This document shows positions 8,603 through 64,000 of a DNA stretch of 64,000 nt, one piece after another. How positions within the stretch are numbered: position 1 is the stretch's first letter; every line of letters starts with the position of its first letter. Source of the stretch: Macrostomum lignano (lineage: Eukaryota); the NCBI GenBank assembly GCA_002269645.1, contig NIVC01001046.1, forward strand, positions 310,705-374,704. The letters are read 5' to 3'. The translations under genes and the position numbers were made by a program. The notes beneath the pieces are model-generated. The model saw only the letters and a program-made list of their open reading frames with translations, was not told the origin of the DNA and did no database searches.

Positions 8603-8684
8603 TGGCGCCCGAACCAAAATCACAGTAAAATCAAGCAGTGAGCGCAAGAGTGCTACAGTGACTCAGCGATTTTTCAACAACAGC

Positions 8685-9446
8685 ATGGACTCCAGGAAGA
8701 GAGGCGTGTTACGAGCGACGGTCACCAGACTGGCACAGAAAGCCGAAGACCTGCTCAAAACAGATGCTGCTGAAGATGAAATCGACAGCGTTCTAGAGGC
8801 TCTACGGTTCAAGAAGCAGCAGCTCCAAGCAGCAGATGAAGAGCTCGCCGCGGAGGTTGACGAGAAGGACGTGCAGGCTGAAGCAGAGACGACAATGGAG
8901 TACGACCTGCTGGCTGGCAAATTGATCTCGAACCTCACCAGACGGCTCCAGGAGCTTCAGACCGCGCGGACCGGCACGCCGCAGGCAACAAATCTGCTGC
9001 AGAATACAGCCATACAGACGACGACTTCGTCCAAGTCTTCGGAAGAGAATTCTTCAACGACAAGGACTCAGACTGCCATCAGGTTGCCAAAACTGCCGCC
9101 ACCGTCATTCAGTGGCGATCGGACCCAATGGACGGAATTCTGGGACCGCTTCAACTCCAGTATCCATGACAACCCGAGCCTGAGTGTCGTCGACAAATTC
9201 AGCTACCTGCAGTCGTGTCTGTCTGGGGAAGCCCGAAACTCGATCGCTGGTCTCAACATCACGAAGGACAACTACCATATCGCCATCGACAACCTGCAAC
9301 GACGATTTGGATCCCGCAACGGAGCCGTGCGCGAGCACCTGGCAAAGTTCTCGGTGCTGACCTGCTCCAGTTCGTCGGCACAGCACCTGAGGAATTTCTA
9401 CGACCAAGTCAATGGAAATGTCCGCAGTCTGACGAATCTCGGGTGA
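8685..9446 (+). CDS. BEL/Pao Gag, N-terminal part (DUF1759-like)
   Basis: RLPKLPPPSFSGDRTQWTEFWDRF..IHDNPSLSVVDKFSYLQSCLSGEA motif. First ATG is at 8685. Stops at TGA 9444-9446, where the frame shifts into the downstream ORF. Confidence 0.9.
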   Translation: MDSRKRGVLRATVTRLAQKAEDLLKTDAAEDEIDSVLEALRFKKQQLQAADEELAAEVDEKDVQAEAETTMEYDLLAGKLISNLTRRLQELQTARTGTPQATNLLQNTAIQTTTSSKSSEENSSTTRTQTAIRLPKLPPPSFSGDRTQWTEFWDRFNSSIHDNPSLSVVDKFSYLQSCLSGEARNSIAGLNITKDNYHIAIDNLQRRFGSRNGAVREHLAKFSVLTCSSSSAQHLRNFYDQVNGNVRSLTNLG

Positions 9447-18473: not shown

Positions 18474-22709
<4,236 letters not shown>

Positions 22710-36890: not shown

Positions 36891-36955
<65 letters not shown>

Positions 36956-36966
36956 GACAGTCAGGC

Positions 36967-37041
<75 letters not shown>

Positions 37042-37060
37042 TAGACAGAGACAGTCAGGC

Positions 37061-37153
<93 letters not shown>

Positions 37154-40100
37154 GACAGTCACGCAGACAGGCAGACAGACAGACAGACAGACGGACAGTC
37201 AGGCAGAAAGACAGACAGACTAACAGACAGACAAAACAGACCTGCGACAGCTCAGCCAGCAGCTTCTCCCGCTCGGCCTCGCGGCCCCTGGCAGCCTGGT
37301 ACAATTCGCGCAGTCCGGCCGCCTCCTCGGTCGCCTCTGCCGCCTGCCGCTTCAGCTGCTCCTCAGACTGCGCCTGCAGCCGCAGCGCCAGCCGGAACTC
37401 ATCCTCCAGCGCGCGGTACCGCTCGCCGGCCTCCGCCAGCCGTTCCTCGAGTCGGCGAATCGCCTGAGCCGCACATCGCCTCTCCCTGTCAGCCTCCTTA
37501 GCAACCAGAGATTCGAGCTCGGGACTGCCCATCCGGTAGCAGCCGGCCAGCTGGCGCTGGAAGTCCCGCTCCCGTTCCGCTAGCAGGTGCTCCGCCTGGC
37601 GCAGCGACTCCCCCAGGCGCTCCGCTTGGTCGCGCTGCGTCGCTGCTTCTACCTCGGCACGGGCGGCGCGCTTCTCGGCTTCGGCCGCCGACTGGGCGCG
37701 CCGACGCTCCTCACCGCTGGCGGCGCGGCGCAGGCGCTCCAAGCCGGCGCGCATCTCCTCGACGCGGCGCTCGGCCTCGACGCGCGCCGATTCCGCTGCG
37801 GCGCCGTCGGCCTCCGCTTTGGCGGCGCGAGCCTCAGCCGATTCGCGCATCTCGCGCTCGTCTGCCGCGGTCGACTTCAGCTTCTCGGCGGCGTCGACGG
37901 CGGCGGCGCGAACGGCGGCGTCTTCGCGGCTCTGCGCCTGCAGCAGCTGGGCGTGCTCGGCGAGCCGGCGGCAGGCCGCTTCGCTTTTCCAGCGCCGCTC
38001 GCGTTCGAGGTCGAGCTCGCGAAGCAGCTCCTGGGTTGGTGGGAGGCGGGGGTTCGAGCGTTAGGATTTCTCCTGTTTGGGGATTCGGGCTTGAGGATTT
38101 CTCCTGTTTGGGGATTCGGGCTTGAGGATTTCTCCTGTTTGGGGATTCGAGTTTGAGGATTTCTCCTGTTTGGGAATTTGAGTTTGAGGATTTCTCCTGT
38201 TTGGGAATTTAAGTTTGAGGATTTCTCCTGTTTGGGGATTCGAGTTTGAGGATTTCTACCGTTTGGGGATTCGAGTTTGAGGATTTCTACCGTTTGGGGA
38301 TTCGAGTTTGAGGATTTCTCCTGTTTGGGGATTCGCGTTTGATGATTTCTCCTGTTTGGGGATTCGAGTTTGAGGATTTCTCCTGTTTGGGGATTCGAGC
38401 TCTGGGATTTCTTAGGTTCAAAGATAAAAGAGATTACTAGTGAAAAAAAGGCGAGGCTGTGGGATTTAGTATGCAGCTGTGATGATGGGGCAGCTGTAAT
38501 GATGGGGCAGTTGTGATGCTGGGGCAGCTGTGATGCTAGGGCAGATGTGATGATGGGGCAGATGTGATGATGGGGCAGTTGTGATGCTGGGGCAGCTGTG
38601 ATGCTAGGGCAGTTGTGATGCTGGGGCAGTTGTGATGCTGGGGCAGTTGTGATGCTGGGACAATGAACAAAGGATAGAAAAGCCATCGGAATAACCGGAG
38701 GCGATAAGAGCGCGAGCCAGCGGAATCCGGGGGGGGGCTCAGGTGTGAGTAATTACCGAGCACTCAAAGCCACAGGTGCGCGGGTTGCTAACGGAGGCTA
38801 ATTCCGTCATCCCAGTAAGCCCGTATGCTTCTGTTTGGCCACAAAGGGTCCCTAAAATACACATCGGCTGGGAATTGAATCAGGAAGGGCGCGGACGAGG
38901 ATTCGGCTTCTCTCTAAAAATCCCCAATTAATTAACCGAAGCCAGAATTAGAGGGACGCAATTGACGGTTTTTGTCTAATTGGGAAAGAGCATAGAGTGA
39001 GGTCTGCGAATTTATTCAAAGTAGATATGGGGATAAATTTCATTCTCAGTTAATACGGTTAAACTGCAGTCTTGAAAAGGTCCGAAGCTACCTGTATTCG
39101 GGTGAGAAATTGCGTGATGGGAAGTGATCTCGTTTGGCACGTCTCGGCGTCTCTGCCTTCATGAGTCTACCTCTCTAACTAACCTTCCCTTGCCTACTTC
39201 TCTGACTACTTATTCCTATCAATTTCTCTGACTACCCATTCCAGTCTACTTCTCTGACTACCCCTTCCAGTCTACTTCTCTGACTAGCCCTTCCAGTCTA
39301 CTTCTCTGACTAACTCACACTTCCTACTTCTCTGGTTACTTCTACGTGTCTACTTCTCTGACTTACCCCTTGCTATCTACTTCTCTGAATAACTCTACCT
39401 GTTTACTTCTCGTCCTCTGTCTGTCTACACTTCTCTGACTACTCTTTTCTGCCTACTTCTCTGACTACCTTTCCTTATCTACGGCTCGCACTTCCAACTA
39501 CCTCCCTTGTCTGCTTCTTTGATTAATTCTACTTTTCTATTTCTCTGACTATCTATCAAGACTACCTTTTTGACTACTTCTCCCTATCTACCTCTCCTTA
39601 CCCACCTCTGTCTACCCTTAATCTATTAAAAGGACAACTGAAGAAATCATTTTTCCGATATCAGGTAACAAACGAGCTTGGAATTGAAGCAGATATTCTA
39701 AAAATATTCTAACAAAAGACCAATCGACGAAACTTTGAAACTTTTGTTCAACTTATCCACTCGAAAATAAAAGGGATAAGCTAAGCAAGCTGAGTGAGTG
39801 GCCCCCTAGTAGCTGAAAGCAACAATCATTGCCCTTGTTCTATAGAATGCGGCACAATAGCCACTGCGCAAGTGAATTCGACACGTCAAACAATAGATAA
39901 TTTACGCTGCCTTTGTCTGCGTAAAAGCCTGCGTCTAAAAATAAAACACAACTGCCATTCTCTACTGTGTGTAGCATGTGTGTGCCAGTCATTCCTTGTG
40001 TCTCACTATCCATGTGTGTGTGCCAGTCATTCCTTGTGTCTCACTATCCATGTGTGTGTGTGTGCCAGTCATTCCTTGTGTCTCACTATCCATGTGTGTG

Positions 40101-43100
40101 TGCCAGTCATTCCTTGTGTCTCACTATCCATGTGTGTGTGCCAGTCATTCCTTGTGTCTCACTATCCATGTGTGTGTGCCAGTCATTCCTTGTGTCTCAC
40201 TATCCATGTGTGTGTGCCAGTCATTCCTTGTGTCTCACTATCCATGTGTGTGTGCCAGTCATTCCTTGTGTCTCACTATCCATGTGTGTGTGCCAGTCAT
40301 TCCTTGTGTCTCACTATCCATGTGTGTGTGCCAGTCATTCCTTGTGTCTCACTATCCATGTGTGTGTGTGCCAGTCATTCCTTGTGTCTCACTATCCATC
40401 TGTGTGTGTGTGCCAGTCATTCCTTGTGTCTCACTATCCATGTGTGTGTGCCAGTCATTCCTTGTGTCTCACTATCCATGTGTGTGTGCCAGTCATTCCT
40501 TGTGTCTCACTATCCATCTGTGTGTGTGCCAGTCATTCCTTGTGTCTCACTATCCATGTGTGTGTGCCAGTCATTCCTTGTGTCTCACTATCCATGTGTG
40601 TGTGCCAGTCATTCCTTGTGTCTCACTATCCATGTGTGTGTGTGCCAGTCATTCCTTGTGTCTCACTATCCATGTGTGTGTGCCAGTCATTCCTTGTGTC
40701 TCACTATCCATCTGTGTGTGTGCCAGTCATTCCTTGTGTCTCACTATCCATGTGTGTGTGCCAGTCATTCCTTGTGTCTCACTATCCATGTGTGTGTGCC
40801 AGTCATTCCTTGTGTCTCACTATCCATCTGTGTGTGTGCCAGTCATTCCTTGTGTCTCACTATCCATGTGTGTGTGCCAGTCATTCCTTGTGTCTCACTA
40901 TCCATGTGTGTGTGCCAGTCATTCCTTGTGTCTCACTATCCATCTGTGTGTGTGCCAGTCATTCCTTGTGTCTCACTATCCATGTGTGTGTGCCAGTCAT
41001 TCCTTGTGTCTCACTATCCATGTGTGTGTGCCAGTCATTCCTTGTGTCTCACTATCCATGTGTGTGTGTGTGTGCCAGTCATTCCTTGTGTCTCACTATC
41101 CATCTGTGTGTGTGTGCCAGTCATTCCTTGTGTCTCACTATCCATGTGTGTGTGTGTGCCAGTCATTCCTTGTGTCTCACTATCCATCTGTGTGTGTGTG
41201 CCAGTCATTCCTTGTGTCTCACTATCCATGTGTGTGTGCCAGTCATTCCTTGTGTCTCACTATCCATCTGTGTGTGTGTGTGCCAGTCATTCCTTGTGTC
41301 TCACTATCCATCTGTGTGTGTGTGCCAGTCATTCCTTGTGTCTCACTATCCATGTGTGTGTGCCAGTCATTCCTTGTGTCTCACTATCCATCTGTGTGTG
41401 TGTGCCAGTCATTCCTTGTGTCTCACTATCCATGTGTGTGTGCCAGTCATTCCTTGTGTCTCACTATCCATCTGTGTGTGTGTGTGCCAGTCATTCCTTG
41501 TGTCTCACTATCCATCTGTGTGTGTGTGCCAGTCATTCCTTGTGTCTCACTATCCATGTGTGTGTGTGTGTGCCAGTCATTCCTTGTGTCTCACTATCCA
41601 TGTGTGTGTGCCAGTCATTCCTTGTGTCTCACTATCCATCTGTGTGTGTGTGTGCCAGTCATTCCTTGTGTCTCACTATCCATCTGTGTGTGTGTGCCAG
41701 TCATTCCTTGTGTCTCACTATCCATGTGTGTGTGTGTGCCAGTCATTCCTTGTGTCTCACTATCCATCTGTGTGTGTGTGCCAGTCATTCCTTGTGTCTC
41801 ACTATCCATGTGTGTGTGCCAGTCATTCCTTGTGTCTCACTATCCATCTGTGTGTGTGTGTGCCAGTCATTCCTTGTGTCTCACTATCCATCTGTGTGTG
41901 TGTGCCAGTCATTCCTTGTGTCTCACTATCCATGTGTGTGTGTGTGCCAGTCATTCCTTGTGTCTCACTATCCATGTGTGTGTGTGTGCCAGTCATTCCT
42001 TGTGTCTCACTATCCATGTGTGTGTGTGTGTGCCAGTCATTCCTTGTGTCTCACTATCCATGTGTGTGTGCCAGTCATTCCTTGTGTCTCACTATCCATC
42101 TGTGTGTGTGTGTGCCAGTCATTCCTTGTGTCTCACTATCCATGTGTGTGTGCCAGTCATTCCTTGTGTCTCACTATCCATGTGTGTGTGCCAGTCATTC
42201 CTTGTGTCTCACTATCCATGTGTGTGTGTGTGCCAGTCATTCCTTGTGTCTCACTATCCATGTGTGTGTGTGCCAGTCATTCCTTGTGTCTCACTATCCA
42301 TGTGTGTGTGCCAGTCATTCCTTGTGTCTCACTATCCATGTGTGTGTGTGCCTCTCCACGTCTGTCTGTCTCACTATGTGTCTGCCTCTCCGTGTGTGTC
42401 CACGTCTGTCTGTCTCTCTTTGTGTCTGCCTCTCCGTGTGTGTCCACGTCTGTCTGTCTCACTATGTGTCTGCCTCTCCGTGTGTGTCCACGTCTGTCTG
42501 TCTCTCTATGTGTCTGCCTCTCCGTGTGTGTCCACGTCTGTCTGTCTCACTATGTGTCTGCCTCTCCGTGTGTGTCCACGTCTGTCTGTCTCTCTATGTG
42601 TCTGCCTCTCCGTGTGTGTCCACGTCTGTCTGTCTCTCTATGTGTCTGCCTCTCCGTGTGTGTCCACGTCTGTCTGTCTCTCTATGTGTCTGCCTCTCCG
42701 TGTGTGTCCACGTCTGTCTGTCTCTCTATGTGTCTGCCTCTCCGTGTGTGTCCACATCTGTCTGTCTCTCTACGTGTCTGCCTCTCCGTGTGTGTCCACG
42801 TCTGTCTGTCTCTCTATGTGTCTGCCTCTCCGTGTGTGTCCACGTCTGTCTGTCTCTCTATGTGTCTGCCTCTCCGTGTGTGTCTCCCTCTCCATGTGTG
42901 TCTGCCTTTCTATGTGTCTGCCTCTCCATTTGTGTCTTCCTCTCCATGTGTGTCTGTTTCTCATTGAGCCTGCTCTACTGGGTCTGTCTTAGCTCTGGTG
43001 AAATTATAAATTCCAGGTGACAGAAAGCGAAAAACGCCCATCAAAAGTACAATAAGCACTGTTATTAAGGGCACTCACACCGTAGGTGAGACTTTCGCCT

Positions 43101-46100
43101 CTCTTTTGAGCAGCAGCCGGCTGGCCTGTCACGGCCAGATTGACGGCTCCGGCCGTTGCTGACGCTGTGGCTGCTCCGCTACCGCTCGATCCGCCTTTGT
43201 CGTCCTTCTTTGTCGCGGAGTCCCCCTGCGGCTGGCGGCTGGAGTGAGGAGTTTAACGATTTTTGCTTGACAGATGATGCTTAACGTCCTTCAGCTGGCG
43301 CCAAATCCTATCCTAATCCCTTCGGTCCTTCAGATGGCGCCAAATCTAATCCTAATCTCTTCGGTCCTTTAGATGGCGTTAAATCCTATCCTAATCCCTT
43401 CAGTCCTTCGGATGGCGTTAAATCCTATCCTAATCCCTTCAGTCCTTCGGATGGCGTTAAATCCTATCCTAATCCCTTCAGTCCTTCGGATGGCGCCAAA
43501 TCCTATCCTAATCCCTTCAGTTTTTGGGATGGCGCCAAATCCTATCCTAATCCCTTCAGTTTTTCGGATGGCGCCAAATCCTATCCTAATCCCTTCAGTC
43601 CTTCGGATGGCGCTAAATTCTATCCTAATCCCTTAAGTCCTCCAGATAGCGCTAAATCCTATCCTAATCCCTTCAGTCCTTCAGATAGCGCCAAATCCTA
43701 TCCTAATCCCTTCGGTTTTTCGGATGGCGCCAAATCCTATCCTAATCTCTTCAGTCCTTCGGATGGCGCCAAATTCTAAACCCTATGGTTCTTCGGATGG
43801 CGCCAAATCCTATGCTAATTCCTTCAGTCCTTCAGATGGCGCCAAATCCTATCCTAATCCCTTCAGTCCTTCGGATGGCGCCAAATCCTATCCTAATCCC
43901 TTCAGTCCTTCGGATGGCGCCAAATCCTATCCTAATCCCTTCAGTCCTTCAGATAGCGCCAAATCCTATCCTACTCCCTTCAGTCCTTCGGATGGCGCCA
44001 AATCCTATCCTAATCCCTTCAGTCCTTCAGATGGCGCCAAATCCTATCCTAATCCCTTCAGTTTTTCGGATGGCGCCAAATTCTATCCTAATCCCTTCAG
44101 TCCTTCGGATGGCGCCAAATCCTATCCTAATCCCTTCAGTCCTTCAGATGGCGCCAAATCCTATCCTAATCCCTTCAGTCCTTCGGATGGCGCCAAATCC
44201 TATCCTAATCCCTTCAGTCCTTCGGATGGCGCCAAGTCTCACACGACTCGGCCCTTCAGTGAGTTTCCAAAATTTTCTTTTCCGTAAGACATATATAAAT
44301 GGAATTCTCCCAAGGAATTGGCCGGGCTACTTAATTAGGAGATTAATAATACTAGTAGGAAAAAGGAGGAATGAGTGGGAGGTTCCTGTGTTCCTGTTCA
44401 TGAATTCTGCTAGGACTGCAGCTTTGACCGAAAGCAAAGGAAAATGTCTACATTAATAAGTGGGCATTTACACCCATATTAGTAGCAGACAAGCAATCAG
44501 CGCCCCCAACGGGGGGCCAACAAAGAATGGAATAATTTTTTTTGAATAAACTGCATGTAGATTCTGATCCTAGCCTTGACATCTAAAAATCCCGCCCCCA
44601 CTAAGCCTTAACATCTCAGCTATTCTTCCTATAAGCCCCGACACCTCAGAAATTCCTTTCGTAAGCCTTGAAATCCCAGAAATTCCCCCAGTGAGCCTTG
44701 AAATCTTAGTAATTCTCCCCAAGAGTCACAGCATAGTTTCACGTGACGCTTTTTTCTGTTTTATATGACGCTTCTTTTATGCCTTTATGAAGCTTTTTTA
44801 TTTTTACATGACGTTTCTTTTATGTCTGCATGACGTTTCTTTTATGTCTACATGACGCTTCATCTATATCTGACATGACGCTTCTTTTATGTCTGACATG
44901 ACGTTTCTTTTATGTCTGACATGACGTTTCTTTTATGTCTGACATGACGTTTCTTTTATGTCTACATAAAGCTTTTTTTATTTTTTACATGACGTTTCTT
45001 TTATGTCTGACATGACGTTTCTTTTATGCCTGACATGACGTTTCTTTTATGTCTACATGACGCTTCATCTATGTCTGACATGACGCTTCTTTTATGTCTG
45101 ACATGACGTTTCTTTTATGTCTGACATGACGTTTCTTTTATGTCTGACATGACGTTTCTTTTATGTCTACATAAAGCTTTTTTTATTTTTTACATGACGT
45201 TTCTTTTATGTCTACATGACGCTTCATCTATGTCTGACATGACGCTTCTTTTATGTCTGACATGACGTTTCTTTTATGTCTGAGATGACGTTTCTTTTAT
45301 GTCTACATGACTCTTCATCTATATCTGACATGACGCTTCTTTTATGTATGACATGACGTTTCTTTTATGTCTGACATGACGTTTCTTTTATGTCTACATA
45401 AAGCTTCTTTTATGTTTGACATGACGTTTCTTTTATGTCTACATGACGATTCATCTATGTCTGACATGACGCTTCTTTTATGTCTGACATGACGTTTCTT
45501 TTATGTCTGAGATGACGTTTCTTTTATGTCTGACATGACGCTTCTTTTATGTCTGACATGACGTTTCTTTTATGTCTGACATGACGTTTCTTTTATGTCT
45601 GACATGACGTTTCTTTTATGTCTACATAAAGCTTTTTTTATTTTTACATGACGTTTCTTTTATGTCTGACATGACGTTTCTTTTATGTCTGACATGACGT
45701 TTCTTTTATGTCTACATAAAGCTTTTTTTATTTTTTACATGACGTTTCTTTTATGTCTACATGACGCTTCATCTATGTCTGACATGACGCTTCTTTTATG
45801 TCTGACATGACGTTTCTTTTATGTCTGAGATGACGTTTCTTTTATGTCTGACATGACGCTTCTTTTATGTCTGACATGACGTTTCTTTTATGTCTGACAT
45901 GACGTTTCTTTTATGTCTGACATGACGTTTCTTTTATGTCTACATAAAGCTTTTTTTATTTTTACATGACGTTTCTTTTATGTCTACATGACGCTTCATC
46001 TATGTCTGACATGACGCTTCTTTTATGTCTGACATGACGCTTCTTACATCATATTGTTCTTACACCTGTCTTGAGTAAAGCAAAGACAGGCAAAAGTTAT

Positions 46101-47082
46101 AGATTCGATTTTGTGAGTGGCCCACATTAATTTAGGGCTTGTGCATGAAAATTATTGCCTATGAAGGCCAGCCCCTAATGACAATATCAAGGCTGCTGTG
46201 TCGGGCTTTCTGATTGGCTGGACAAAATCAGGCCCTGTAGGGCAACACGGAGAGACATTGTCGCAGAGCAAACGCATAGGTATAACATCGTTAGTGTCTA
46301 TCCATTCCCAGACTTACAAATAAGTCTTAGTTACCATCGCTATTCAATATCCAAATTCTAAAATAAACAAAATAGCATCCACTATAAAAGTTTCAGGAGC
46401 AGCAATGCAGTACGATTGGAATGGCACAGTGCAGGAGCAGCAACAGCTAGTCAGACTGCAGCTCCATCTGTGGGGCTATGTCGGCACCGGTCTCAGTCTA
46501 TTAGGCATGGCCGGCAATGCTCTTAGCATTCGAGTTCTCTGCTCACGCAGAATGTATTCGTCTACTGCGCTGTACCTGGCGGCGCAAGGCTTCTTAGACA
46601 TTATTGTGCTGCTATTGTTCGACATCTGCATGGGTCTGCCGCTTGTGTCGGCTGTGTTTGCCCGCCTAGCCAGGCCCGACTCGCTGCTGATCGGCATACT
46701 CTACCCGCTGTCCCTGTTCATTCACATGTGCGGCATGTACGTCACAGCCTGCTTCACTGTGGAACGCTGCCTCTCAGCAAAATTCCCACTTCGCTCCACT
46801 AGCGCCTGCAGCCGCAGACGAGCTCGGAGACGCCTAATGGCCATCTTTCTGTTCTCTTTAATCTACAATGCGCCTCGAGGCTTCGAACGAATGCCATTCG
46901 GGAATGAGACTGAGAACAATTCGAGGAACGGCACTTGGACTCTGATTGACAATTGGTGGTATCGCGGTATCTACAGCGGCGCAATGTACTCGCTATTTAT
47001 GTACGTGCTACCTCTAACTCTAATCACTGTGTCTAATGCTGTTCTTGTTCACACTGTACGGAAGTCAACTCGCAGGACTACT

Positions 47083-47158
<76 letters not shown>

Positions 47159-50100
47159 TGATGCCCAGTAGCCCAAGGGGACCCAGCAGGCAATCAAGCC
47201 AACAGTTGAAACGGCTGGAACGGGACCGCAGCATCAGCAGGATGCTTGCCGGAGTGGTTGTTGTGTTCGTCCTCTGCCAGACCTTCGCTCTAGTGGACAA
47301 TTTGGCGGCAGTGGTGCTGCAGACTCCGCCTAACCCGTTGGCGCACTGGCAGCAAGCGTTTTACATCGTCGCCCAGTTTATGATTGTCCTCAATTCGTCA
47401 GTAAATTTCATTCTCTATTGCTTTTTTGGCCAAAGATTTCGGAGGGAATTGCAATTGACTCTGTGCGCCGGCGGTGGCGGAGTCGGTGGACAGCAGAATG
47501 CCGGACGTCAAGCCGGAAGCAACATAGCTTTGCAGAATATGAACGGAAGTCGAACGCCCAGCCAGTTGCACGGCAGTGCCAGCCCGTTATGGAGCAGTCC
47601 TAGTCCGCAGCACGGCTGCGCCAGTCTGCTGGCCAGTCCCGAACCAAACCGATCAAAGCTTGCCCGAGCTGTCTCAAGCAGGCGAGAGCAGCGAAATTGG
47701 CTGATGGCCGAACAGGAGCCAATGCAGATTGATGATTCGCCTCCGGCGTCAATTTGACTTTCTGATGCTTTGCTAGGCTTTTGTACTATATTATATTCAT
47801 TCTCATAGCAGAGTTCCCCTGTCTTTGTTCGCTTAGCAGTGTATCTCAATGCTACCTCACAAGAGTCTTTGTTGTTCGCTTAGCAGTGTCTCTCAATGCT
47901 ACCCCACAACAGTCTTTGTTGTTCTCTTAGCAGTGTCTCCCAATGCTACCCCACAACAGTCTTTGTTGTTCTCTTAGCAGTGTCTCTCAATGCTACCCCA
48001 CAACAGTCTTTGTTGTTCTCTTAGCAGTGTCTCCCAATGCTACCCCACAACAGTCTTTCTTGTTCTCTTAGCAGTGTCTCCCAATGCTACCCCACAACAG
48101 GTCTTTGTTGTTCGCTTAGCAGTGTCTCTCAATGCTACCCCACAACAGTCTTTGTTATTCGCTTAGCAGTGTCTCCCAATGCTACCCCACAACAGTCTTT
48201 GTTGTTCGCTATCCCAGATTTCACAAGTCTTTGTTTACGCAACAGACTACAATTATTATCTTTGTGATTAAAAAACGCAGGTTTATTTTAATCTGAAATA
48301 AGAATACCTTAATTTAGCACGCTAGAACCTGCCTCGCCGCCTACGAGCACTTACTTAGCTTACGGCCACTCCATCCTGATGCTGGAATTTCTTTATACCA
48401 TACTTTCTGCTTGTTTTTTTCTTTCACCACTCAGTTTCTGTTCGTGACTTTTCCAGACTTTTCCTGGCAAAAATTTTGAGCACAACTCCTAAACCAAATT
48501 GTTGTGATAATTGTCTCAATTTTGAGTCGAGACTGACATCCATTCTTTATTACATCCGCATAGAAAAAATACACGTGAATAGCACTGAAAAAATGGTAAA
48601 TTTCTGGAAAGATAAAGTTCAAATCGCTAGCAAACATGTACATCTAAATCGGATAGAGGGCATCAAAGATTGAACTCACTGTTTTGTACTTTTTTGCTGC
48701 CCTCTGGCCGACTTCGCTTCAACTTGCTTGTTGTCCTCTTCTGCGAGAATTTGAGGAGAGGGAAAGGATTAAGGGGAGAAGGGAAGGATTAATCAGATTT
48801 GGAAGGAATGAGAAGAGAGAGAACAATTACGGAGAAAGGGAGGAATAATGAGGGAAGTATCAAGGGGATTAAGTAATGATTAAGGGGAAAGAAGGATTAA
48901 GGAGATTAAGGAAGGATTAAGCAGTGGGAATCGAGAATCAGGAAATATCGGTGTAGAAAAGGTGACGCAGAGCAAGATATCTAATCTGGCCTAAAAGTTG
49001 CACAAAAGGCTTCAAGACAGGAGATAAAATATTCGAGTGGGGGGTGTCGGTGCAAACTTGGCAGACCAGGTTTGCGAAGTTTAAGGGGCTAGGGGAGCTA
49101 GACAAGAGGGTAGCGGGATAACAGCTCGTGTGGAAGATTTACAGGCACGGGATTAGAGGCCTTTAGCTTTTCTATCTAATGGCTACTGTGAAAGGGCTAG
49201 TGTTAATTGCTTAGTGCTAATAGGCTAATGCTAATGGACTAATGCCGATGGACTAATGCTACTGGAAAAATGCTAATGGACTAATGCTTCTGTAAAAATG
49301 CTAATGGACTAATGCTACTGGAAAAATGCTAATGGACTAATGATACTGTAAAAATGCTAATGGACTAATGCTACTTGAAAAATGCTAATGGACTAATGCT
49401 ACTTGAAAAATGCTAATGGACTAATTCTACTGGACTAATGCTAATAGACTAATGCTAATGGACTAACGCTACTGTAAAAATGCTAATGGACTAATGCTAA
49501 TGGAGTAATGCTAATGGACTAACGCTAATGGACTAATGCTACTGGAAAATGCTAAAGGACTAATGCTAATGGACTAGTGCTAATGGACTAATGCTGATGG
49601 ACTAATGCTACTGGAAAATGCTAAAGGACTAATGCTAATGGACTAGTGCTAATGGACTAATGCTGATAGGCTACCAAAAATCATCAGGAGCAAATATTCA
49701 CCCTGCTCAGCCCTCGACGCCGCGCCGCCCTCTGCCAGCTGCTCAAGCCGCCGCTCCAGCTGCTCCAGCCGCTCTCGATAAGCCTTCTCACCGTCGGCTT
49801 TGCCGGCCTCGTCACCTTCGCCGCTCCGACGCTCGTCAGCATCGGCTCCGTGATTGTCGTCGACACCATCGTCGTCCAAATCGCCAGCCGGCCTCCGACT
49901 GCGGAACCGCTTGTAGGCTGCGTCAATCTTCGGAGTCGGCAGCCTTCTCGACTTTGACTCATCTTCGTTGCCGCCTCCTCCAGCGTCGGTGGCGGCCGAC
50001 GAGGAGCCGAGGAATTCCAGGAATTCTTCCAGTCCGGGCACGTCGGCAAGAACCTCGACGGCCGCTCGATCGCCCTGACGGTCCAGCTGGTCAAGCGAGT

Positions 50101-50381: not shown

Positions 50382-52353
50382 GCCTGCCTGCCAGACAAAT
50401 GAAAGCCTTGCATTCACACAATAGCTTTTCACAGGTGTCCATTAAAATTCGCCATTTGAAGAGTTTCGACCGACCTTATCCTTCGCTCTCCTATCCCTGC
50501 GCAAGACCGTAGCTATTGTTGCAAGAAAATTTCAAAGAGTAACTTTCGAGATCGCAAAGAGTTGAAAGATTTGGTTAAAAAGTTTAATTATCGGTTTAGT
50601 AGGAAAAAATCCCTTTCAGCCGCATTTTAATTCTTATGGATTGACCTGAACCTTCAATACTCAGAACAGAAATGCTCTTCAGTAAAGTTCATTTCAATAG
50701 AAGATCACTCAATAAAGTTTTTTAAAGAAAAGAAAAATCACCAATAGCTAACTGTGTTTTAAATCCAAATCTAAATATTCCTTCATTAGGGAAATCCCAA
50801 TCTAAATAATCCTCAATTGGGGAAATCCCTATCTAAATAATCCTCAATTGGGGAAATCCCAATCTAAATATTCCTCCATTAGGGAAATCCCAATCTAAAT
50901 AATCCTCAATTGGGGAAATCCCAATCTAAATAATACTCAATTGGGGAAATCCCAATCTAAATAATCCTTAATTGGGGAAATCCCAATCTAAATAATACTC
51001 AATTGGGGAAATCCCAATCTAAATAATCCTTAATTGGGGAAATCCCAATCTAAATAATCCTCAATTGGGGAAATCTCAATCTAAATAATCCTTAATTGGG
51101 AAAATCCCAATCTAAATAATCGTCAATTGGGGAAATCCCAATCTAAATAATACTCCATTAGGGAAATCCCAATCTAAATAATCATCAATTAGCAAAATCC
51201 CAATCTAAATAATACTCAATTGGGGAAATCCTAATCGAAATAATCGTCAATTGGGGAAATCCCAACCTAAATAATCCTTATTGGGGAAATCCCAATCTAA
51301 ATATTCCTCCATTAGGGAAATCCCAATCTAAATAATCCTCAATTGGGGAAATCCCAATCTAAATAATACTCAATTGGGGAAATCCCAATCTAAATAATCC
51401 TTAATTGGGGAAATCCCAATCTAAATAATACTCAATTGGGGAAATCCCAATCTAAATAATCCTTAATTGGGGAAATCCCAATCTAAATAATCCTCAATTG
51501 GGGAAATCTCAATCTAAATAATCCTTAATTGGGAAAATCCCAATCTAAATAATCGTCAATTGGGGAAATCCCAATCTAAATAATACTCCATTAGGGAAAT
51601 CCCAATCTAAATAATCATCAATTAGCAAAATCCCAATCTAAATAATACTCAATTGGGGAAATCCTAATCGAAATAATCGTCAATTGGGGAAATCCCAATC
51701 TAAATAATCGTCAATTGGGGAAATCCCAATCTAAATAATCGTCAATTGGGGAAATCCCAATCTAAATAATCGTCAATTGGGGAAATCCCAATCTAAATAA
51801 TACTCCATTAGGGAAGTCCAATTAGATTAATCCCCAATTGGGAAATCTCCTAAAGCCCCGCCTCGGGCGCAAGACTCGCCTGATTTCCATGCAGCTCAAT
51901 GCAGGTGAGCCGATACGCCGGGCCCCGCATCTCGGCAAAGCCGGTCACGTCTCTGATGGCATTGTAGGACAAGTTGATTCGAACCAACGACTTCAATCCG
52001 GCCAGGCCTTCAACCTTTGCCAGGCGATTGCCAGCCAGATTAAGAGTTCGCAGGCTGGCCAGACAGTCGAGGCCACTAATCCGGCTGATCCTATTAGAGG
52101 ACAAATCCAGGTGGCGCAGGTTGGGGGCGCGGTCCAGGCCGGCCAGGGCCTCGATTCGGTTGCAGTGGCAGTTGAGCACGGACAGCCGATCGTGCAGCGG
52201 CAGGTCCAGCAACCGGCCGACTCCGCAGTCGATGTAGCTCAACTCTGAGGCTTCCGTCGGGTCCGCTTTGAAGCCGCGAGCGCCGCCGGGGCGCTTGACC
52301 ACCTCCTGCTGCTGCCGCTTTGACTGCTGGGTCCGCTGAAGCGATGCCAGCAA
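34583..52353 (-). CDS. LRRCC1: Leucine-rich repeat and coiled-coil centrosomal protein 1; exons ~52353-51880, 50245-49702, 48740-48680, 43238-43081, 39152-39092, 38030-37242, 36540-36469, 36001-35549, 35092-34583
   Basis: SDS22-type LRRs ([32 protein letters not shown]), LRRcap [78 protein letters not shown] all match recalled human LRRCC1. No ATG was found in exon 1, and there is a one-base phase mismatch at exon 5/6. Confidence 0.9.
35110..35525. repeat. Diverged ~31-bp minisatellite, LRRCC1 last intron
   Basis: cccatttcttcccaatcccaatgtacattat variants. Confidence 0.9.
36030..36400. repeat. Purine-rich degenerate repeat, LRRCC1 intron 7
   Basis: gagagtagacagtgagat-like units. Confidence 0.85.
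36890..37241. repeat. (CAGA)n microsatellite abutting an LRRCC1 splice donor
   Basis: Directly visible. Confidence 0.96.
38062..38405. repeat. 31-bp minisatellite, LRRCC1 intron 5
   Basis: Unit ggatttctcctgtttggggattcgagtttga. Confidence 0.93.
38480..38660. repeat. ~17-20-bp G-rich minisatellite
   Basis: gtgatgctggggcagtt variants. Confidence 0.88.
39190..39600. repeat. Diverged pyrimidine-rich repeat (ctacttctctgact)
   Basis: Directly visible. Confidence 0.8.
39970..42955. repeat. Compound satellite (~3 kb): 38-46-bp unit with variable (GT)n core, then a 42-bp unit
   Basis: gccagtcattccttgtgtctcactatccat+(gt)n to ~42350, then gtctgcctctccgtgtgtgtccacgtctgtctgtctctctatgt. Confidence 0.97.
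43290..44235. repeat. 39-bp minisatellite, LRRCC1 intron 3
   Basis: Unit gatggcgccaaatcctatcctaatcccttcagtccttcg. Confidence 0.95.
44740..46045. repeat. ~22-23-bp minisatellite with higher-order structure
   Basis: acatgacgtttcttttatgtctg with periodically recurring variants (acataaagcttttttta; acgcttcatcta). Confidence 0.95.
46405..47757 (+). CDS. Intronless class-A peptide GPCR, FMRFamide-receptor-like, 450 aa
   Basis: Seven hydrophobic segments; GN in TM1, [27 protein letters not shown]; polyQ in ICL3; N-glycosylation sequons. The family call is from recalled protostome FMRFaR-like sequences; the ligand is unknown. Confidence 0.88.
47815..48210. repeat. 44-bp minisatellite
   Basis: gtctttgttgttctcttagcagtgtctcccaatgctaccccacaaca-like units. 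Confidence 0.92.
49215..49670. repeat. ctaatgga/ctaatgcta degenerate repeat, LRRCC1 intron 2
   Basis: Directly visible. Confidence 0.92.
50288..50395. repeat. (TCTG)n/(CCTG)n microsatellite
   Basis: Directly visible. Confidence 0.93.
50775..51830. repeat. 31-bp minisatellite with internal hairpin, LRRCC1 intron 1
   Basis: Unit ttggggaaatcccaatctaaataatcctcaa; TTGGG/CCCAA stem; includes an internal block duplication. Confidence 0.95.
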
Positions 52354-56883: not shown

Positions 56884-57404
56884 TTACGATCGAAAGTCCT
56901 CCACGCCCGCCTGGGTCATCAGGTCGGCGACGCTACGCTCGAGTTCGTCAATACGCCGGCCCATTTCGTCGATTCGGCCGGTGATGCGGTCGCTGGTGTG
57001 GCCGAAATTGTCGGTCATGCCCTGCAGCATGGCCTGCAGCTGCAGGTGGCGAGGAGGGTAGCGGATCGGTAAGCATATCCCGGACTACAGATATTAAAAA
57101 ACCATAGACAGTTCGTTAGTAATACTCGTTTAAGCTAATATTAATTTAGTAGCTTGAACGAACAGGCCGATCCACGCAGAATGTCGCTTTAATTTTCGAC
57201 AGTGCCCAAAAAAGCAATACGCTAAATACTGTTGGCTTGAATCCGGTTCTAACATGGTGTTCCTTAAAGCTTTGTGTTTTTGCCTTCTTCTGGTTCGTCA
57301 AGACGTCCCCAGACCAACAAGCCCCAGCTTACGTGATTCGTGAGCTCTTGGACATTGTGCGGATCAACAACTCCATATGATTTATCCTTGGCGAAGTCGG
57401 CCAT
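56884..57404 (-). CDS. HSBP1: Heat shock factor-binding protein 1; exons 57404-57333 and 57039-56884 (75 aa); absent from the ORF track
   Basis: [75 protein letters not shown] matches recalled human HSBP1 ([38 protein letters not shown]). Phase-0 GTAAGC..CAG intron. Confidence 0.93.
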
Positions 57405-57987: not shown

Positions 57988-58343
57988 ACTGACTGACTGA
58001 CTGACTGACTGACTGACTGACTGACTGACTGACTGACTGACTGACTGACTGACTGACTGACTGACTGACTGACTGACTGACTGACTGACTGACTGACTGA
58101 CTGACTGACTGACTGACTGACTGACTGACTGACTGACTGACTGACTGACTGACTGACTGACTGACTGACTGACTGACTGACTGACTGACTGACTGACTGA
58201 CTGACTGACTGACTGACTGACTGACTGACTGACTGACTGACTGACTGACTGACTGACTGACTGACTGACTGACTGACTGACTGACTGACTGACTGACTGA
58301 CTGACTGACTGACTGACTGACTGACTAACTGACTGACTGACTG
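57988..58343. repeat. (GACT)n microsatellite
   Basis: About 355 bp, one interruption. Confidence 0.98.
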
Positions 58344-58495: not shown

Positions 58496-61400
58496 TCATT
58501 TGCAGTAGCCGCAAGTCCTGGCGCACAGACTGCGCATTGAGCGGCACATGTTGCTCTTCTTCACGAACAGGCAGTCAACAGGGCGGATTTTGTCTTTGCA
58601 TTCTGGAAGACGTGCGGGATTCGTGGGATTTGGCGGAAGGTATTCAGGAAAGATTAAGTTAAGAATGACAGCTAATGAAAGCTTTGACTTACTCTGAGTT
58701 GAGGCGCACTTCTCGCTGGAGGTGTAACGTTTCGGCACGCAAACGTTCGATCCGGGATACGTGACGTAATATATAAAGCAGCGGATTCGCTTGCCGCACT
58801 TGCACTGAGACACGGTGGACCGATCGCGCGGACATTTCGGCGAGCAAGAGAAAACGGCGAGACTTCGGCGAACAATGCAGTGACCCTTCACACGGATTGT
58901 GTACAGTGTGACTACCTGCCGGATCCATTTCTTGCCGTGACGATAGCACTTGCTAATCAGCTTTCTGGTGACTAAGCCGCAGTTCTTGCAGCTATAAGTC
59001 TTAGCATGAGAGCTGATGCGACATCGGCCATTGACAAAGCGGGCGACGATCTTTGTAATTTTGCGTTGGCCATTTTTGCACGGTCCGATCAACTGGTAAG
59101 AGCCGACTTGGCAACGGACGCAGCGCAGGTTTTTGATTCTGACAGAAACGCGCCACAGACGTAGTTTTTTATCGTAGTAGACCTGAACTCTAATGTCCTT
59201 CTGCCAGCCGGACTTGGAGCAGCGGCTGCGCCAGTGGTAGCCTCTCGGTTGACGCTTGCAAACACCGCAAGTGTAATTGCACAGATGACGTACGAGGTGC
59301 CTGGAACACTTCGACTTCTTGCAGAATTCTCGTCTGTCCTCGCATTTGCGACATGGCACTCGCAGTTTGTGCACCCGCCTTTGGCAGCTACCGCTGCGAT
59401 TCCGCTTCCACGTAGCCACCGCTGCTGTCCTGTAGCATACGCGCTGCTTGCCTAATTTGATGCAGCTGCACTTGTATTGCTTCAGGATGCGGCGGAAGGG
59501 ACATTTAGTAGGACAGATCCGCTCAAACAAAATACAGTCTCGCGTCTTGCGCAACTTCAGCGACGGGAACCGCAGGAGGAGACCTCTGCGATTGATTCGC
59601 AGAAGGAGACACTTTCGCGTTGAATGATCATAGTCGAATGCCCGGCATTTGCTGTTTTTCTGACAGCTGCTCATGCAAACGTCGAATGAGGTGCGCTGAG
59701 CCAAAATGAACGAGCGTCGGAAGTGCCGCTGCTTGCTGAGGCAGAAATTTTTGGCATAAATGAGCCGCGTTTTGGGGCAGCCTGTGGGAGAATTGGTTTT
59801 GAATTACAGTTGAAAATATCAATATTCGTGTTCTATAAAGCAAAGTTAGTGCTTACCATAGCAACGATGGCAGGTCCTCGCGCAAAGACGCTTGGCGAAA
59901 TACGGGTATTTGTCGCACAATTGAATCTTGTTAGAAGCGGCCCACTTTCTGCATATTCCAGTGGGTAGCAGGTCTCTACACTTGGACTTGCATTGCACCA
60001 CGCGTCTGTAGATCTTCGATACGCATTTACATTTTACAGGCTTGTGAATGACAACAATAACTGCTTGAGTCTTGCCTGTACATTTTGACACCTTTGTGCG
60101 CGCCTTCGGACAACGTATAAGTCTGTAGCTTGTAAACTTTCGAAGCTTGCAACTGTTACCACTTACAAAGAAGCGATACTCAGTTACCACTAAGCGGTTG
60201 TTTCTAAGGCAACTGTAGCGTTTGTATGGCTTCTGACAGGCGCAAAGCTTCAAGAAAGAATTGGAAACGGTTTTGCAGCTGCAACCGACGCGTCGCTTCC
60301 ATGTCTGCACGACTCGCGCGTACTTTTTATTTCCCTTAACGATATTACACGGGCCAGTAACACTATGACGCTTGGAGCTGCACGTCACACGAACTCTTGA
60401 GGTGATCTTGCTGCGTGCAATGCACTTATTTCCAGACTTCTGCCAATAATGGTGAATGTAAACCACGAGCCGGAGCGGCACTTCTTGGTTGCGTAACCGC
60501 GCCTACATCTGCAAAGCTCATAGCGCGACTTTGTGTACTTGATGCAGACACAATTTCTCTTCTTCCAATAGCACTCGACCCACTTTCGATAGAATCCATT
60601 CTGTCTGGCAGCACATTTGGATTTTTTCGTTCGAGGTGAAGGACAGCGGACTGGTCGGTAAATTTTGCGAGACACGCGGCGACAACTGCGTTTGTGGAAT
60701 TCAAGCCAAGAATGGACTTCAACATGCTGCTGCGAACGTTTGTCGCAGTAGCGGTATTTCTGAAGTTGCCGCTTGCAACCTGAAATAACATAACACTTAG
60801 GGTTTGTAACTGTTTGATTGAGTAGAAAATTAACTACATTGGTAGAAAATTGAACTTACAGCAAGTTTCCTTCCACACTTTATAATGACGCTTGCATTTG
60901 CAGTTTCGCACAGTGTACCATATGCTTCCCATACTTCTCTTGCAGCTCGAACGATTGCATTTACCCCTGACTATTTTTCGAGTCTTGCACGTTACGCGAG
61001 AAGTGCGGCATCTGCGGTTTTTGGTGCACCCAGTCGGTTTGAGAGTGTAAGTATAGTGGCAGCGCTGCTGGTGATTTCCCCGAACGCAGGTGTTGACAAC
61101 GTGCTGCTTAGGACAACGGCAGCGTATGAGCTGGTGTCGGCGGCCAACCTTACAGCGGCACTGTGCAACATGCCGAGTTACTATCGTGTCTTTCCTCCAG
61201 CCATCTTTGCGACACGGTCCTCGGTGAAGCTTGGAGCGTGGCCGACAGGCTGCATGCACTTGAGCGGAAATGTCATACCGGCGCACGCTTCGATGACAGG
61301 CGTGCTTCTTGAATCGGTATGAGGTGACAACTCGGTACAGTCTGTTTTTGTAACACTTCTTTTCAACGCTGTCTCTGTGAATGCAGCAGCACAGCTTCCA

Positions 61401-64000
61401 CCAGCTTTTGGATCTGCGCACGCATTTCTTTCTACGCCGATCCAAATAGAATGTGGTGCGTGTATACACTCTCCTGCAGTTGTGTTTGTGACAAGCGGAA
61501 TGCTTAACGACCGGCTTGGCACAAGCTTTCTTGCAGATTCTCTCAAACAGGCGCGTGTGCGGAGAAGTGATACCTACAGAATGTATGAGTTGAAGCATCT
61601 TAACATTGAAACAAGTGTCATAAACTTAATTCAAATACAGAAAATTTGCATCAAAAAGAAATGGTTAACCTACTTGCGCGCGAATTCCAAGTTCCATGTA
61701 ATGCATTTTGATTGGTTTTGAAGCCAGCCACTTGACGTATAGACCGGATTTGGGAATCGACGGAAGCCAACAACGAAAACGCTGGCTTTGCGCTTAATCT
61801 TGTCGGCCAGTGCGACTGTCTTGTGCTGCTTGCTATGTTTGCCGCAGGTAATGATTACTACAATCTTTTCTACACCCGGTCGGGACTTAGCGTGTAGACG
61901 CCTATTGACTTCCTTAAGAGCCCGCACAAATCGGTTCTTGTGTGGTAAATGCCTTGATAGGTAGTTTTCAAATGCTTCAATTGTGAACGTGTACATTCCA
62001 GTTGTAGGAACCATAGTAATTGAACACTTGCAGAGGTGTGCAAAAAGTAGGTGGAAACGGTCTTTAGGAAGCTGACTATTCGTTTCTTGTAGCCACGCCT
62101 GTCTTTTCCGTACAGGTCAAACTCAAGAAAAGATCGACAGCTTTGTGGGCACAAGCGCACTTTCGGAATTCAGAGCGACACGGCGCACACAACGGCAGCC
62201 AATCTTTACCCAGTAGTGCACGATGTACCGTTGTTTTCCTCCTTTGCACCTTCCCTGGATAGCCCTGAGCACGCGCGCGTGTGCAGTTCACACGCTGAAA
62301 GAGTCCTTTGTTTTTGAGTAACAGCGACCATTTCTTAGCGTGTGAGTAATCCGTCTGATTCGTATCGCACCGCGAATACAAACTCGGGTCGTTGTTGCCT
62401 TGTTGCAACAGCATTTGCTCTTCTTCACTTGCTTCTTCATAATGCACTTACACTTGCGAACGCTGTATTGCTTGATTATTACTGTGCGATTACAGCGCTT
62501 GCAATTTCGTTGTATGGTCGATTTAGGACATGACACACGCTTTCTAGAGACAGTTCTATAGCTGACGCAACGACATCCAACCAAACGCCAACAGTTTCGA
62601 ATGGCCGCAACTTGATTGCCATTTTCGCACCTGTATGACAAAGTGCACCGACGACAATCAGAGTAGCACAGCACTCGTTTGGTTTGCCGTATGCATTTGC
62701 ATCCAGATCGGACAAAGCGCTTGTATACCTTATAGTATTTTGGTTTTCCTGCTGTACTGTGTGACAGCCGCCAAGTTGTGTCGCATCGAACCGCCTGTGA
62801 TTGACGCTTAACGTCCCGCACACAGCGACCACGACTTAATCGGTAAGAATAATGGAATGTAACTATATGTCCCGGTGGCAGATCTTCTTTTTGTGTGGCT
62901 TCAAACAGCGGCAGACAACCGAACGAGTTTGAACTCTTTTATGACAGCGACATGCCTTTTGATACCAGGAGACGGTCGTCTCAACCAAATAAAATCCGTA
63001 CTTTGTTGGTTTACTGCAGCAACTACGAGTCATTTTTTTCGTTTGCAAAGGATCGGTTTATCCACGCGACGTGTCTGCTTGAGGCATCTACCATTCGATA
63101 GTCTCCACACGGTGATGTAGCGCTCCTTACGACAACGGCCACGAGAACACTTGCAAAGAACTCTTTGCACTGGCTTCTTGCATTCTGTAATGTTAATGTT
63201 AGAAAAAACGATGTTCATTCGCACACCTTGCCTGAGCGGAAGAAAAATGAAAATAAAATTTTAAACGGGACTCACTGTATCTCAAGAACACAGTTTTGCA
63301 GCTTTTCACGCACTTGCAATCCTGCCGCTTAACCGAGCAACGGGTAACCTTCAGCACACCGCCAGGAAGCTTTTGTTTGGAAACCGTATTATGACGCTTG
63401 CACTCTGAAAATATCATGAAACATTTTATATAGCATGTCAAATACTTAAGGTAACATTTCCAGTATTAAGAGCTAAAAAACAGCACATACTAATTTTCCT
63501 GCTGCTCTTAGTAACCTTCTTGATACACTTCCACTGTTTGAGAACTCGCTTGGTGATAGTTGTGATGACGTACCCTCGTTTGCGGTCGCATTTAACTGTG
63601 CGTCTGTAGCCCTTACAGCAACACACGCGATGCCGATGATAACTCTTCCAAATGCATTTTTCGCCACTGAGAACCTGTTTCTTAAAAAGCAGCCTCTGGC
63701 GACACGATTTCTTGTTGCACGGTGCAGTCGAAACTAGTGTGCTACCGCGATGACAGCCTGAAAGTATTTTGTTTGAGTGTGCATTATTACTTAAAAATAA
63801 GATACGTTTGACGTCATGATTTGCACGAACTAAGCTAAAAATCTAAACGCAATACTTACCGCAGCGACGTATGTGTCGCGTTACTTTTTTAAAGCATCTG
63901 CAGTGCTTAACGTATGGCCTCGTCACAAAAACGTTAAGCTGTCCAGACTTCTTGTTGCAAACCTTTTTCACCTTCACCTGACCACAGCTCAAGCGTTGGC
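58496..64000 (-). CDS. 3' part of a very large Cys/Lys/Arg-rich modular protein (vWA-like, PAN/Apple, 3x ShKT, cationic Cys-rich repeats); 5' end outside window; multiple frameshifts
   Basis: Exons >64000-63860, 63757-63491, 63404-63276, 63184-61674, 61573-60860, 60779-59857, 59781-58693, 58602-58496 with short GT-AG introns. ShKT: CRDL..C..LCARTCHRC, CEDRREFC..CNYTCGVC, CKDK..LCARTCGYC. PAN: FDVCMSSCQKNSKCRAFDYDHSTRKCLL. vWA-like: AVDLF..IVSFLKTV..EKIVVIITCG..VFVVGF. Confidence 0.75.

Follow-up and report, generated by a model that had tools for sequence, protein, structure and literature searches.

A 64,000-nt stretch of the Macrostomum lignano genome (assembly GCA_002269645.1, contig NIVC01001046.1, positions 310,705 to 374,704 of the forward strand), referred to below as the window and in whose coordinates all positions are given, carries at its right-hand end the 3′ part of a gene for a large, strongly basic and cysteine-rich protein. 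The gene lies on the minus strand (63998-58499), where seven exons joined over six GT-AG introns give a stitched sequence of 4,920 nt, or 1,639 codons, closed by a TGA stop codon at 58498-58496; upstream, the coding sequence leaves the window at 64000. The original prediction, a note made from the letters alone, had claimed about 4.9 kb of coding sequence and ~1,600 residues, a size that this reconstruction reproduces; the minus strand, the six introns and the discontinuous reading frame were absent from it. Intron lengths range from 73 to 158 nt, and all six introns are in phase 1, as is typical of shuffled extracellular modules. The least certain of them is the intron at 61731-61574, whose acceptor matches the UniProt model A0A1I8FT25 described below. 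Stop-free stretches of the minus strand between 64000 and 58496 contain 23-29% Lys+Arg and 8-12% Cys. The stitched product has 210 Lys, 227 Arg, 160 Cys, 29 Asp and 24 Glu residues (26.7% Lys+Arg, 9.8% Cys, 3.2% Asp+Glu) and a net charge of about +384, which bears out the proposed basic and cysteine-rich character; the total number of cysteines is even. The two alternative frames of the stitched sequence contain 47 and 73 stops, and the contrast between these and an uninterrupted frame of 1,639 codons with a 44-residue Cys periodicity supports both the coding reading and the architecture. About 150 nt past the stop codon lies a perfect (ACTG)89 microsatellite (57988-58343), which is probably inside the 3′ untranslated region of the gene. 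Past this microsatellite, at about 57920, the minus strand has its first canonical AATAAA, and an HSBP1 exon (56884-57030, minus strand, 64.4 bits) follows directly downstream on the same strand as the gene.

The protein is dominated by a repeat of about 44 residues. Cys positions and BLOSUM self-similarity both peak at lags of 44, 88, 132 and 176 residues, and Cys recurs at lags of 43-45 residues 72 times, compared to 45.5 ± 6.2 times in 1,000 shuffles (maximum 62). Iteration of a hidden Markov model (HMM) on the stitched protein finds about 28-30 units in three arrays (Table 1), in keeping with the dominant Lys/Arg-rich Cys units of the original prediction. The consensus of the unit is x6-C7-x-[KR]-x-G11-x13-[C/G]25-x-C27-x10-[C/V]38-x-C40. 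An HMM from array 2 alone scores array 1 above 100 of 100 shuffles, though weakly. C7, C27 and C40 are invariant across units; in 18 of 23 units, C25 and C38 agree in being present or missing; and C11 accompanies C39, as read off the unit alignment. From U14 to U22 in array 2, units with three and with five cysteines alternate strictly, which gives eight cysteines per 88 residues. Pairwise identity between units is ~20% and there is no higher-order repeat, which argues that the array is old and not recently amplified. Pfam searches with 20 individual units (E ≤ 10) return four unrelated single matches and nothing to fn1, TSP_1, PTN_MK, VWC or EGF, and the only match of the unit profile among PDB sequences is a chance one to NKG2-D (E = 0.068). 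The ~44-residue module therefore looks, from its sequence, like a previously undescribed one, of which 28 or more divergent copies stand here in tandem.

The arrays are interrupted by modules of known type, and the original prediction had named a von Willebrand factor A (vWA) domain with a degenerate metal-ion-dependent adhesion site (MIDAS), a PAN/Apple domain and three ShKT domains. The PAN/Apple domain scores far above the PAN_1 cut-off, and PAN_2 reaches 21.3 bits on the same segment against a cut-off of 21.1. For the vWA-like domain, the degenerate MIDAS is borne out: the site reads D-L-Y-G-K instead of the D-x-S-x-S of metal-dependent ligand binding, and both the DLYGK and the IITCG strings are found in the translation. 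The domain assignment itself stays just below the cut-off and covers only positions 62-141, the middle, of the VWA profile (PF00092). With this MIDAS the domain would be divergent and at best metal-independent. Among the three ShKT segments, the C-terminal one is above the cut-off when scanned alone and at 18.2 bits when the whole exon is scanned, whereas the two internal ones fall below the cut-off and are recognized by the six-Cys order that both retain, ending in C-x3-C-x2-C. The PAN, ShKT and vWA-like modules, together with the phase-1 introns, make up an extracellular-type mosaic of the kind that had been proposed. Inspected by eye, the C-terminal ShKT has a loop that reads CRSMRSLC, without the Lys-Tyr dyad found in channel-blocking ShK toxins, and since this dyad is missing, a structural role appears more likely than a toxin role. 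ShKT domains of nematode mucins and of a limpet mucus protein have been discussed as structural (PMC7333891).

Table 1 Features of the gene in the window. Amino acid (aa) numbers refer to the stitched product.
Feature	Position	Strand	Basis and remarks
Exons	63998-63860, 63757-63491, 63404-63276, 63184-61732, 61573-60860, 60779-59857, 59781-58499	minus	Frame analysis, GT-AG sites
Introns	63859-63758, 63490-63405, 63275-63185, 61731-61574, 60859-60780, 59856-59782	minus	GT-AG, all phase 1
Array 1	62151..63998 (aa 1-525)	minus	About 12 units of ~44 aa; HMM iteration, unit alignments
vWA-like domain	61521..62141 (aa 529-683)	minus	Pfam VWA 22.8-22.9 bits, cut-off 23.8, E = 1e-4
Array 2	59990..61523 (aa 683-1167)	minus	11 units
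ShKT-like segment 1	59861..59980	minus	CRDLLPTGIC...CARTCHRC; six-Cys pattern; Pfam ShK 9.8 bits, E = 1.6
PAN/Apple domain	59513..59743	minus	Pfam PAN_1 (PF00024) 34.3 and 40.3 bits, cut-off 21.4
Degenerate single unit between PAN and ShKT-like segment 2	59351..59515 (aa 1310-1354)	minus	HMM 16.9 bits
ShKT-like segment 2	59258..59344	minus	CEDRREFC...CNYTCGVC; six-Cys pattern; Pfam ShK 13.8 bits, E = 0.087
Array 3	58706..59254 (aa 1388-1570)	minus	About 4-5 more degenerate units; HMM 7-20 bits
C-terminal ShKT	58502..58600	minus	CKDKIRPVDC...CARTCGYC, then K and stop; Pfam ShK (PF01549) 25.2 bits alone, cut-off 20.9
Frame break	63039-63033	minus	A7 to A8
Frame break	62873-62871	minus	GGG to GGGG
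Frame break	62300-62298	minus	TTT to TTTT
Frame break	62280-62273	minus	(CG)4 run, one CG inserted (2 bases)
Frame break	about 62175	minus	+1 base
Frame break	62131-62128	minus	T4 to T5
Frame break	about 62020	minus	+1 base
Frame break	about 60464, GG	minus	+1 base

The fourth and the sixth of the listed exons (63184-61732 and 60779-59857) contain eight frame jumps without a splice site, spanning 60463..63039. All eight are repaired by the addition of bases, after which the 1,639 codons contain zero internal stops. Homopolymer runs of at least 3 bases account for five of the eight breaks, and a CG dinucleotide run for another. The unrepaired reading has an additional in-frame TGA at 62290-62288. 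Interpretations of this codon as selenocysteine or as a mutated codon for Cys were dropped, as the frame-2 reading ...KDSFQRVNCTR... has the x12 spacing of the consensus; since this reading fits the consensus and its DSFQRVNC is also used by A0A1I8FT25, the TGA is most probably an artefact that two indels close by have produced. An initial solution with a single frameshift near 62170 (...VALIPKVRLCPQSC...) was superseded by two shifts that restore the consensus C-x10-C-x-C, as in A0A1I8FT25.

An exhaustive HMMER search of 1.84 billion representative proteins with a profile of 20 repeat units gives a single match, UniRef100_A0A1I8FT25 (E = 7.5e-43, ten stretches), and no other orthologue or paralogue. 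This entry, an "Apple domain-containing protein" of Macrostomum lignano, is an unreviewed automatic model of 969 residues, and 951 of the 955 residues that map onto the translations of the window are identical. The model is ML2-derived, shows several 1-nt indels relative to the window and offers nothing on function. It begins within an intron, hops between the frames of the window, omits the whole of 60465-59857 and the greater part of 63092-62295, and spans less than 60% of the true sequence. It crosses the window frames with zero gap at three places (about 62277, 62177 and 62125), and in turn loses the frame over 62009-61915 and 60776-60624, two stretches in which the window reading is clean. 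The identity and the frame hops together indicate that the entry was modelled automatically, in another assembly, from this locus or from a nearly identical copy of it. As the sole profile match, it left no material for an external alignment. When the last exon (428 residues) was used in a word-indexed homology search, nothing was returned at E ≤ 1e-3, the near-identical UniProt model evidently not being displayed by that search, and the searchable literature library held no paper on the gene by accession or by Macrostomum with ShK, Apple or vWA. Across the homology, profile and literature searches no characterised gene matches the protein, and the homology and profile searches gave no characterised full-length match, consistent with the statement that the architecture is not recognised from any named gene. 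"Unassigned" is thus apt as far as characterised genes go, and has to be amended for the existence of one automatic, badly spliced UniProt model. On this evidence the gene appears to be restricted to the lineage of M. lignano or a very close relative, with a repeat that has no detectable relatives.

Structure prediction for single repeats, which the original prediction had suggested as a check, gives a three-stranded β-meander. The AlphaFold2 model of one unit of array 2 has a mean predicted local distance difference test (pLDDT) score of 92.6, with strands at residues 2-10, 15-26 and 29-40, and the model of a di-unit from the same array (3-Cys plus 5-Cys) has a pLDDT of 96.1 and a predicted TM score (pTM) of 0.64 and shows the E-E-E strand pattern twice. 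An alignment of three to four units for the same purpose was dropped because overlapping rows matched themselves or one half of the query. The unit is thus predicted to be an antiparallel meander of one short strand and a 12-residue hairpin, with cysteines at both ends of the sheet. In this geometry C7, C38 and C40 would lie at one end and C25, C27 and the C40 of the previous unit at the other. Such a placement of cysteines at the meander ends would gather four of them at each unit junction. We propose a C40(i)-C27(i+1) disulfide at every junction, a C7-C38 disulfide within 5-Cys units and a C7(i)-C25(i+1) disulfide where a 5-Cys unit follows a 3-Cys unit. This pairing would explain both the alternation of 3-Cys and 5-Cys units and the co-occurrence of particular cysteines, and neighbouring units may in this way be stapled into a single covalent, stiff polycationic rod. 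A fibronectin type I-like pairing (C1-C3 and C2-C4 in each unit) was rejected as a full explanation, since the three invariant cysteines of a unit cannot all pair within it; it is also opposed by the predicted 12-residue strands, which put C25/C27 at one end of the sheet and C38/C40 at the other.

Foldseek searches with the single-unit model return generic β-meanders only (E > 0.6). The di-unit model has no match at E ≤ 1e-3; its top match is pleiotrophin (2n6f; probability 0.84, E = 0.1, TM 0.33), and midkine-b is also among the matches. Pleiotrophin and midkine are basic, heparin-binding sheets related to thrombospondin type 1 repeats (TSRs) and bind polyanions such as heparin and chondroitin sulfate. 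As in these proteins (PDB 2n6f, 1mkc, 2luu), the unit would be a small, Lys/Arg-rich, disulfide-held three-stranded antiparallel sheet that occurs in tandem, and its Cys spacing across the junction, C40(i-1)-x9-C7-x19-C27-x10-C38, resembles the C-x9-C-x21-C-x9-C of the midkine C-domain (1mkc). Unlike them, it is present in about 28 copies per chain instead of 2, alternates between three and five cysteines per unit, and is set within a mosaic of PAN, ShKT and vWA-like modules. Comparison with TSP_1 domains (PF00090) is similarly divided. These are also elongated, three-stranded, disulfide-capped basic modules of 45-60 residues that often form long tandem arrays in secreted proteins, but the unit consensus has neither the WxxW ladder nor the CSxTCG motif. 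An hhalign comparison of the unit profile with three TSRs of TSP1 gives a probability of 0.2%, and no TSR is found among the top 50 Foldseek matches of either the single-unit or the di-unit model. The description of the unit spacing as "TSP1-like" in the original prediction is therefore unsupported by the sequence: there is no Pfam match, and what remains is a weak likeness, at the level of the fold, to the TSR-related pleiotrophin and midkine. The unit may work like a midkine- or TSR-type basic sheet, yet it is not assignable to those families.

The remainder of the window contains several further genes. An intronless rhodopsin-family G protein-coupled receptor (GPCR) of 450 residues lies at 46405-47757 (plus strand, 7tm_1 59.4 bits) and has in its third intracellular loop a long poly-Gln tract encoded by a CAG repeat (47083-47156); an exact look-up of this receptor in the assembly collection gave no match. 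A cytochrome P450 gene of five exons occupies 18477-22038 (minus strand); Pfam p450 matches its last two exons (profile positions 268-442), and no frame breaks are seen. There are also the C-terminal half of a protein kinase (16486-17031, plus strand), two exons of the tubulin-tyrosine-ligase (TTL) family (30650-31941, plus strand), a TMEM17-family protein (6086-6646, minus strand), a leucine-rich repeat (LRR) protein (51850-52353, minus strand) and a long coiled-coil protein whose introns carry tandem repeats (34583-37850, minus strand). A near-intact retroelement of the BEL/Pao long-terminal-repeat type at 8658-14134 (plus strand) has a gag region matching DUF1759 (108.6 bits at 8658-9443) and a pol open reading frame (ORF) of 1,639 residues (9215-14134). 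Relative to a 54%-identical single-ORF homologue, its gag and pol are joined by one -1 frame break at a GGG run (9440/9443); its named match of highest identity is a Macrostomum lignano protein (72%, local). The window is unusually rich in long tandem arrays, many of them intronic, such as (CTAT)162 at 18931-19579 and a 23-nt unit repeated 57 times at 44744-46045. At 39977-42956, a minisatellite of 2.4 kb is built from units of 38/78 nt (93-94% matches, about 59 copies); a 44-nt array comes after it, and the two give rise in three frames to ORFs that exceed 1,000 codons but are spurious. At the left-hand end of the window (1-326), a 13-nt tandem repeat, TCCCTCATGACCG, is present in about 26 copies within a stretch of 63% G+C.

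Whether the locus encodes a functional protein depends largely on how the eight frame breaks are read. We consider the eight breaks most likely to be single-base deletion errors of the long-read assembly and not inactivating mutations, because A0A1I8FT25 reads through three of them. The Pao retroelement supports this reading, since this otherwise intact element carries a break of the same type at its GGG run. The alternative is a decaying pseudogene, in which real frameshifts have accumulated in one near-identical copy within the partly polyploid M. lignano genome and no functional protein is made. Eight breaks and a naive in-frame TGA inside 2.6 kb would fit such decay, as would the uninterrupted exons of the other genes in the window and the fact that a collection of 15 billion proteins holds no second annotated model of the locus. 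Yet every break is a matter of missing bases, mostly in homopolymer or dinucleotide runs, and the repaired frame, rich in Lys, Arg, Cys, Tyr and Gln codons, contains no nonsense codon where a rough, uncomputed estimate would expect ~4-5 alongside eight real indels. Moreover, A0A1I8FT25 is in frame across three breaks and off frame elsewhere, which is the pattern expected of consensus errors. We therefore clearly, though not overwhelmingly, favour assembly error over a pseudogene, to which we still assign an appreciable minority chance. If this is right, the locus exemplifies how dense single-base deletion errors in M. lignano assemblies spoil automatic gene models.

On balance, we hold it slightly better than an even chance that this is a real, lineage-restricted gene of M. 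lignano or a very close relative, coding for a large extracellular mosaic protein. The architecture as such is ordinary, a secreted-type mosaic combined with a lineage-specific Cys-rich repeat; it is the repeat itself that is new. Secretion, disulfides between units and polyanion binding are what we infer. Several observations weigh against this view of the locus. The P450 exons and the GPCR, kinase, TMEM17 and LRR genes have no obvious frame breaks, which makes a density of eight in 2.6 kb unusual for the target gene, and A0A1I8FT25 might represent a paralogue and not another assembly's version of this locus. The N-terminus of the gene lies beyond position 64000, so a signal peptide would be outside the view that the window gives. 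The vWA-like domain and two of the ShKT segments score below curated thresholds. As for the fold, the AlphaFold2 input alignments consisted of internal repeats only, and the disulfide connectivity is deduced from predicted strands, not observed. The fold likeness to pleiotrophin and midkine is statistically insignificant at E = 0.1 and TM 0.33, Pfam PTN_MK has no match, and hhalign of the unit profile with the midkine and pleiotrophin C-domains gives a probability of 0.2% (PDB 1mkc confirmed the midkine sequence used).

What such a protein might do is suggested by its composition, and two other roles compete with the one that we propose below. A Lys/Arg-rich, Cys-stabilised β-hairpin composition is typical of antimicrobial peptides, and the gene might accordingly encode a polyprotein precursor that is cleaved at dibasic sites into cationic, disulfide-stabilised β-hairpin peptides. 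The 44-residue units are Lys/Arg-rich, Cys-stabilised and predicted to be rich in β-hairpin, and dibasic motifs are abundant. However, acidic spacers or pro-regions between the units are missing, the units abut directly with a Cys pattern that suggests disulfides between them, their identity of ~20% is unlike that of typical multi-copy peptide precursors, and the array has vWA-like, PAN and ShKT modules set into it, all of which makes a peptide precursor very improbable. Hardly less improbable is a place in the duo-gland adhesive set as a cohesive protein of the Mlig-ap1/ap3 type, the extreme positive charge and the shared species notwithstanding. Adhesion in M. lignano is modelled on a polycationic cohesive protein (PMC6410801, PMC9229212): heparin blocks attachment via Mlig-ap1, and polycation-polyanion chemistry is experimentally established (PMC6410801). 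The present protein shares with Mlig-ap1 and with Tmed-ap3 and Mile-ap3 a very large size, an extremely basic composition and the animal group, together with a predicted secretion. In those three proteins, however, the charge resides in Cys-free, low-complexity GRK repeats (PMC6410801, PMC9229212), so the protein does not belong to the flatworm glue polycations known so far; its own charge is carried by units that are predicted to be folded and framed by cysteines, whereas the Lys/Arg regions of Mlig-ap1 and Tmed-ap3 have no Cys framework. The accessory modules differ as well. Flatworm cohesive proteins carry C-lectin, vWD, C8, TIL and EGF modules (PMC6410801, PMC9229212), and Mlig-ap1, whose gene is on another scaffold, has C-lectin, vWD/C8/TIL and EGF (PMC6410801); Pfam scans of the present gene match none of these, and find vWA-like, PAN and ShKT modules instead. 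Nor is the gene among the ten transcripts assigned in adhesive-organ screens, all of which belong to ap1 or ap2 (screens cited in PMC6410801).

The role that we consider most likely is that of a secreted polycation stapled by disulfides. The protein would bind or condense polyanions, for example sulfated glycans, mucus, glycocalyx or charged surfaces, with each unit working in the manner of the basic β-sheet of midkine or pleiotrophin, and would serve as a structural or cohesive component of a secretion. The polycation-polyanion chemistry of attachment through Mlig-ap1 in this species (PMC6410801) is a precedent for such a role. As candidate secretions, the original prediction had named glue, rhabdite or mucus, cocoon and seminal fluid. 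We also put forward, more tentatively and as a proposal that is less probable than the existence of the gene itself, that the ~44-residue unit is a new, Macrostomum-restricted, disulfide-stapled β-sheet whose copies, around thirty or more in number, form a rigid, structured polycation. The unit may either have converged on the midkine/TSR type or have diverged from it beyond recognition. The chain would be a folded alternative to the disordered GRK glue polycations, with which the animal would hold polyanionic partners reversibly in a secretion such as an adhesive, rhabdite or mucus material, egg cement or seminal fluid. As a compact, confidently predicted cationic β-sheet of 44 residues, the unit is of possible interest for glycosaminoglycan binding or for biomimetic adhesives. 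Should the gene prove intact and expressed, a new, folded and disulfide-framed polycationic repeat, with no detectable relatives outside one flatworm genus, would join the known extracellular modules, and an animal with reversible polycation-polyanion adhesion would possess a second polycation of a different structure.

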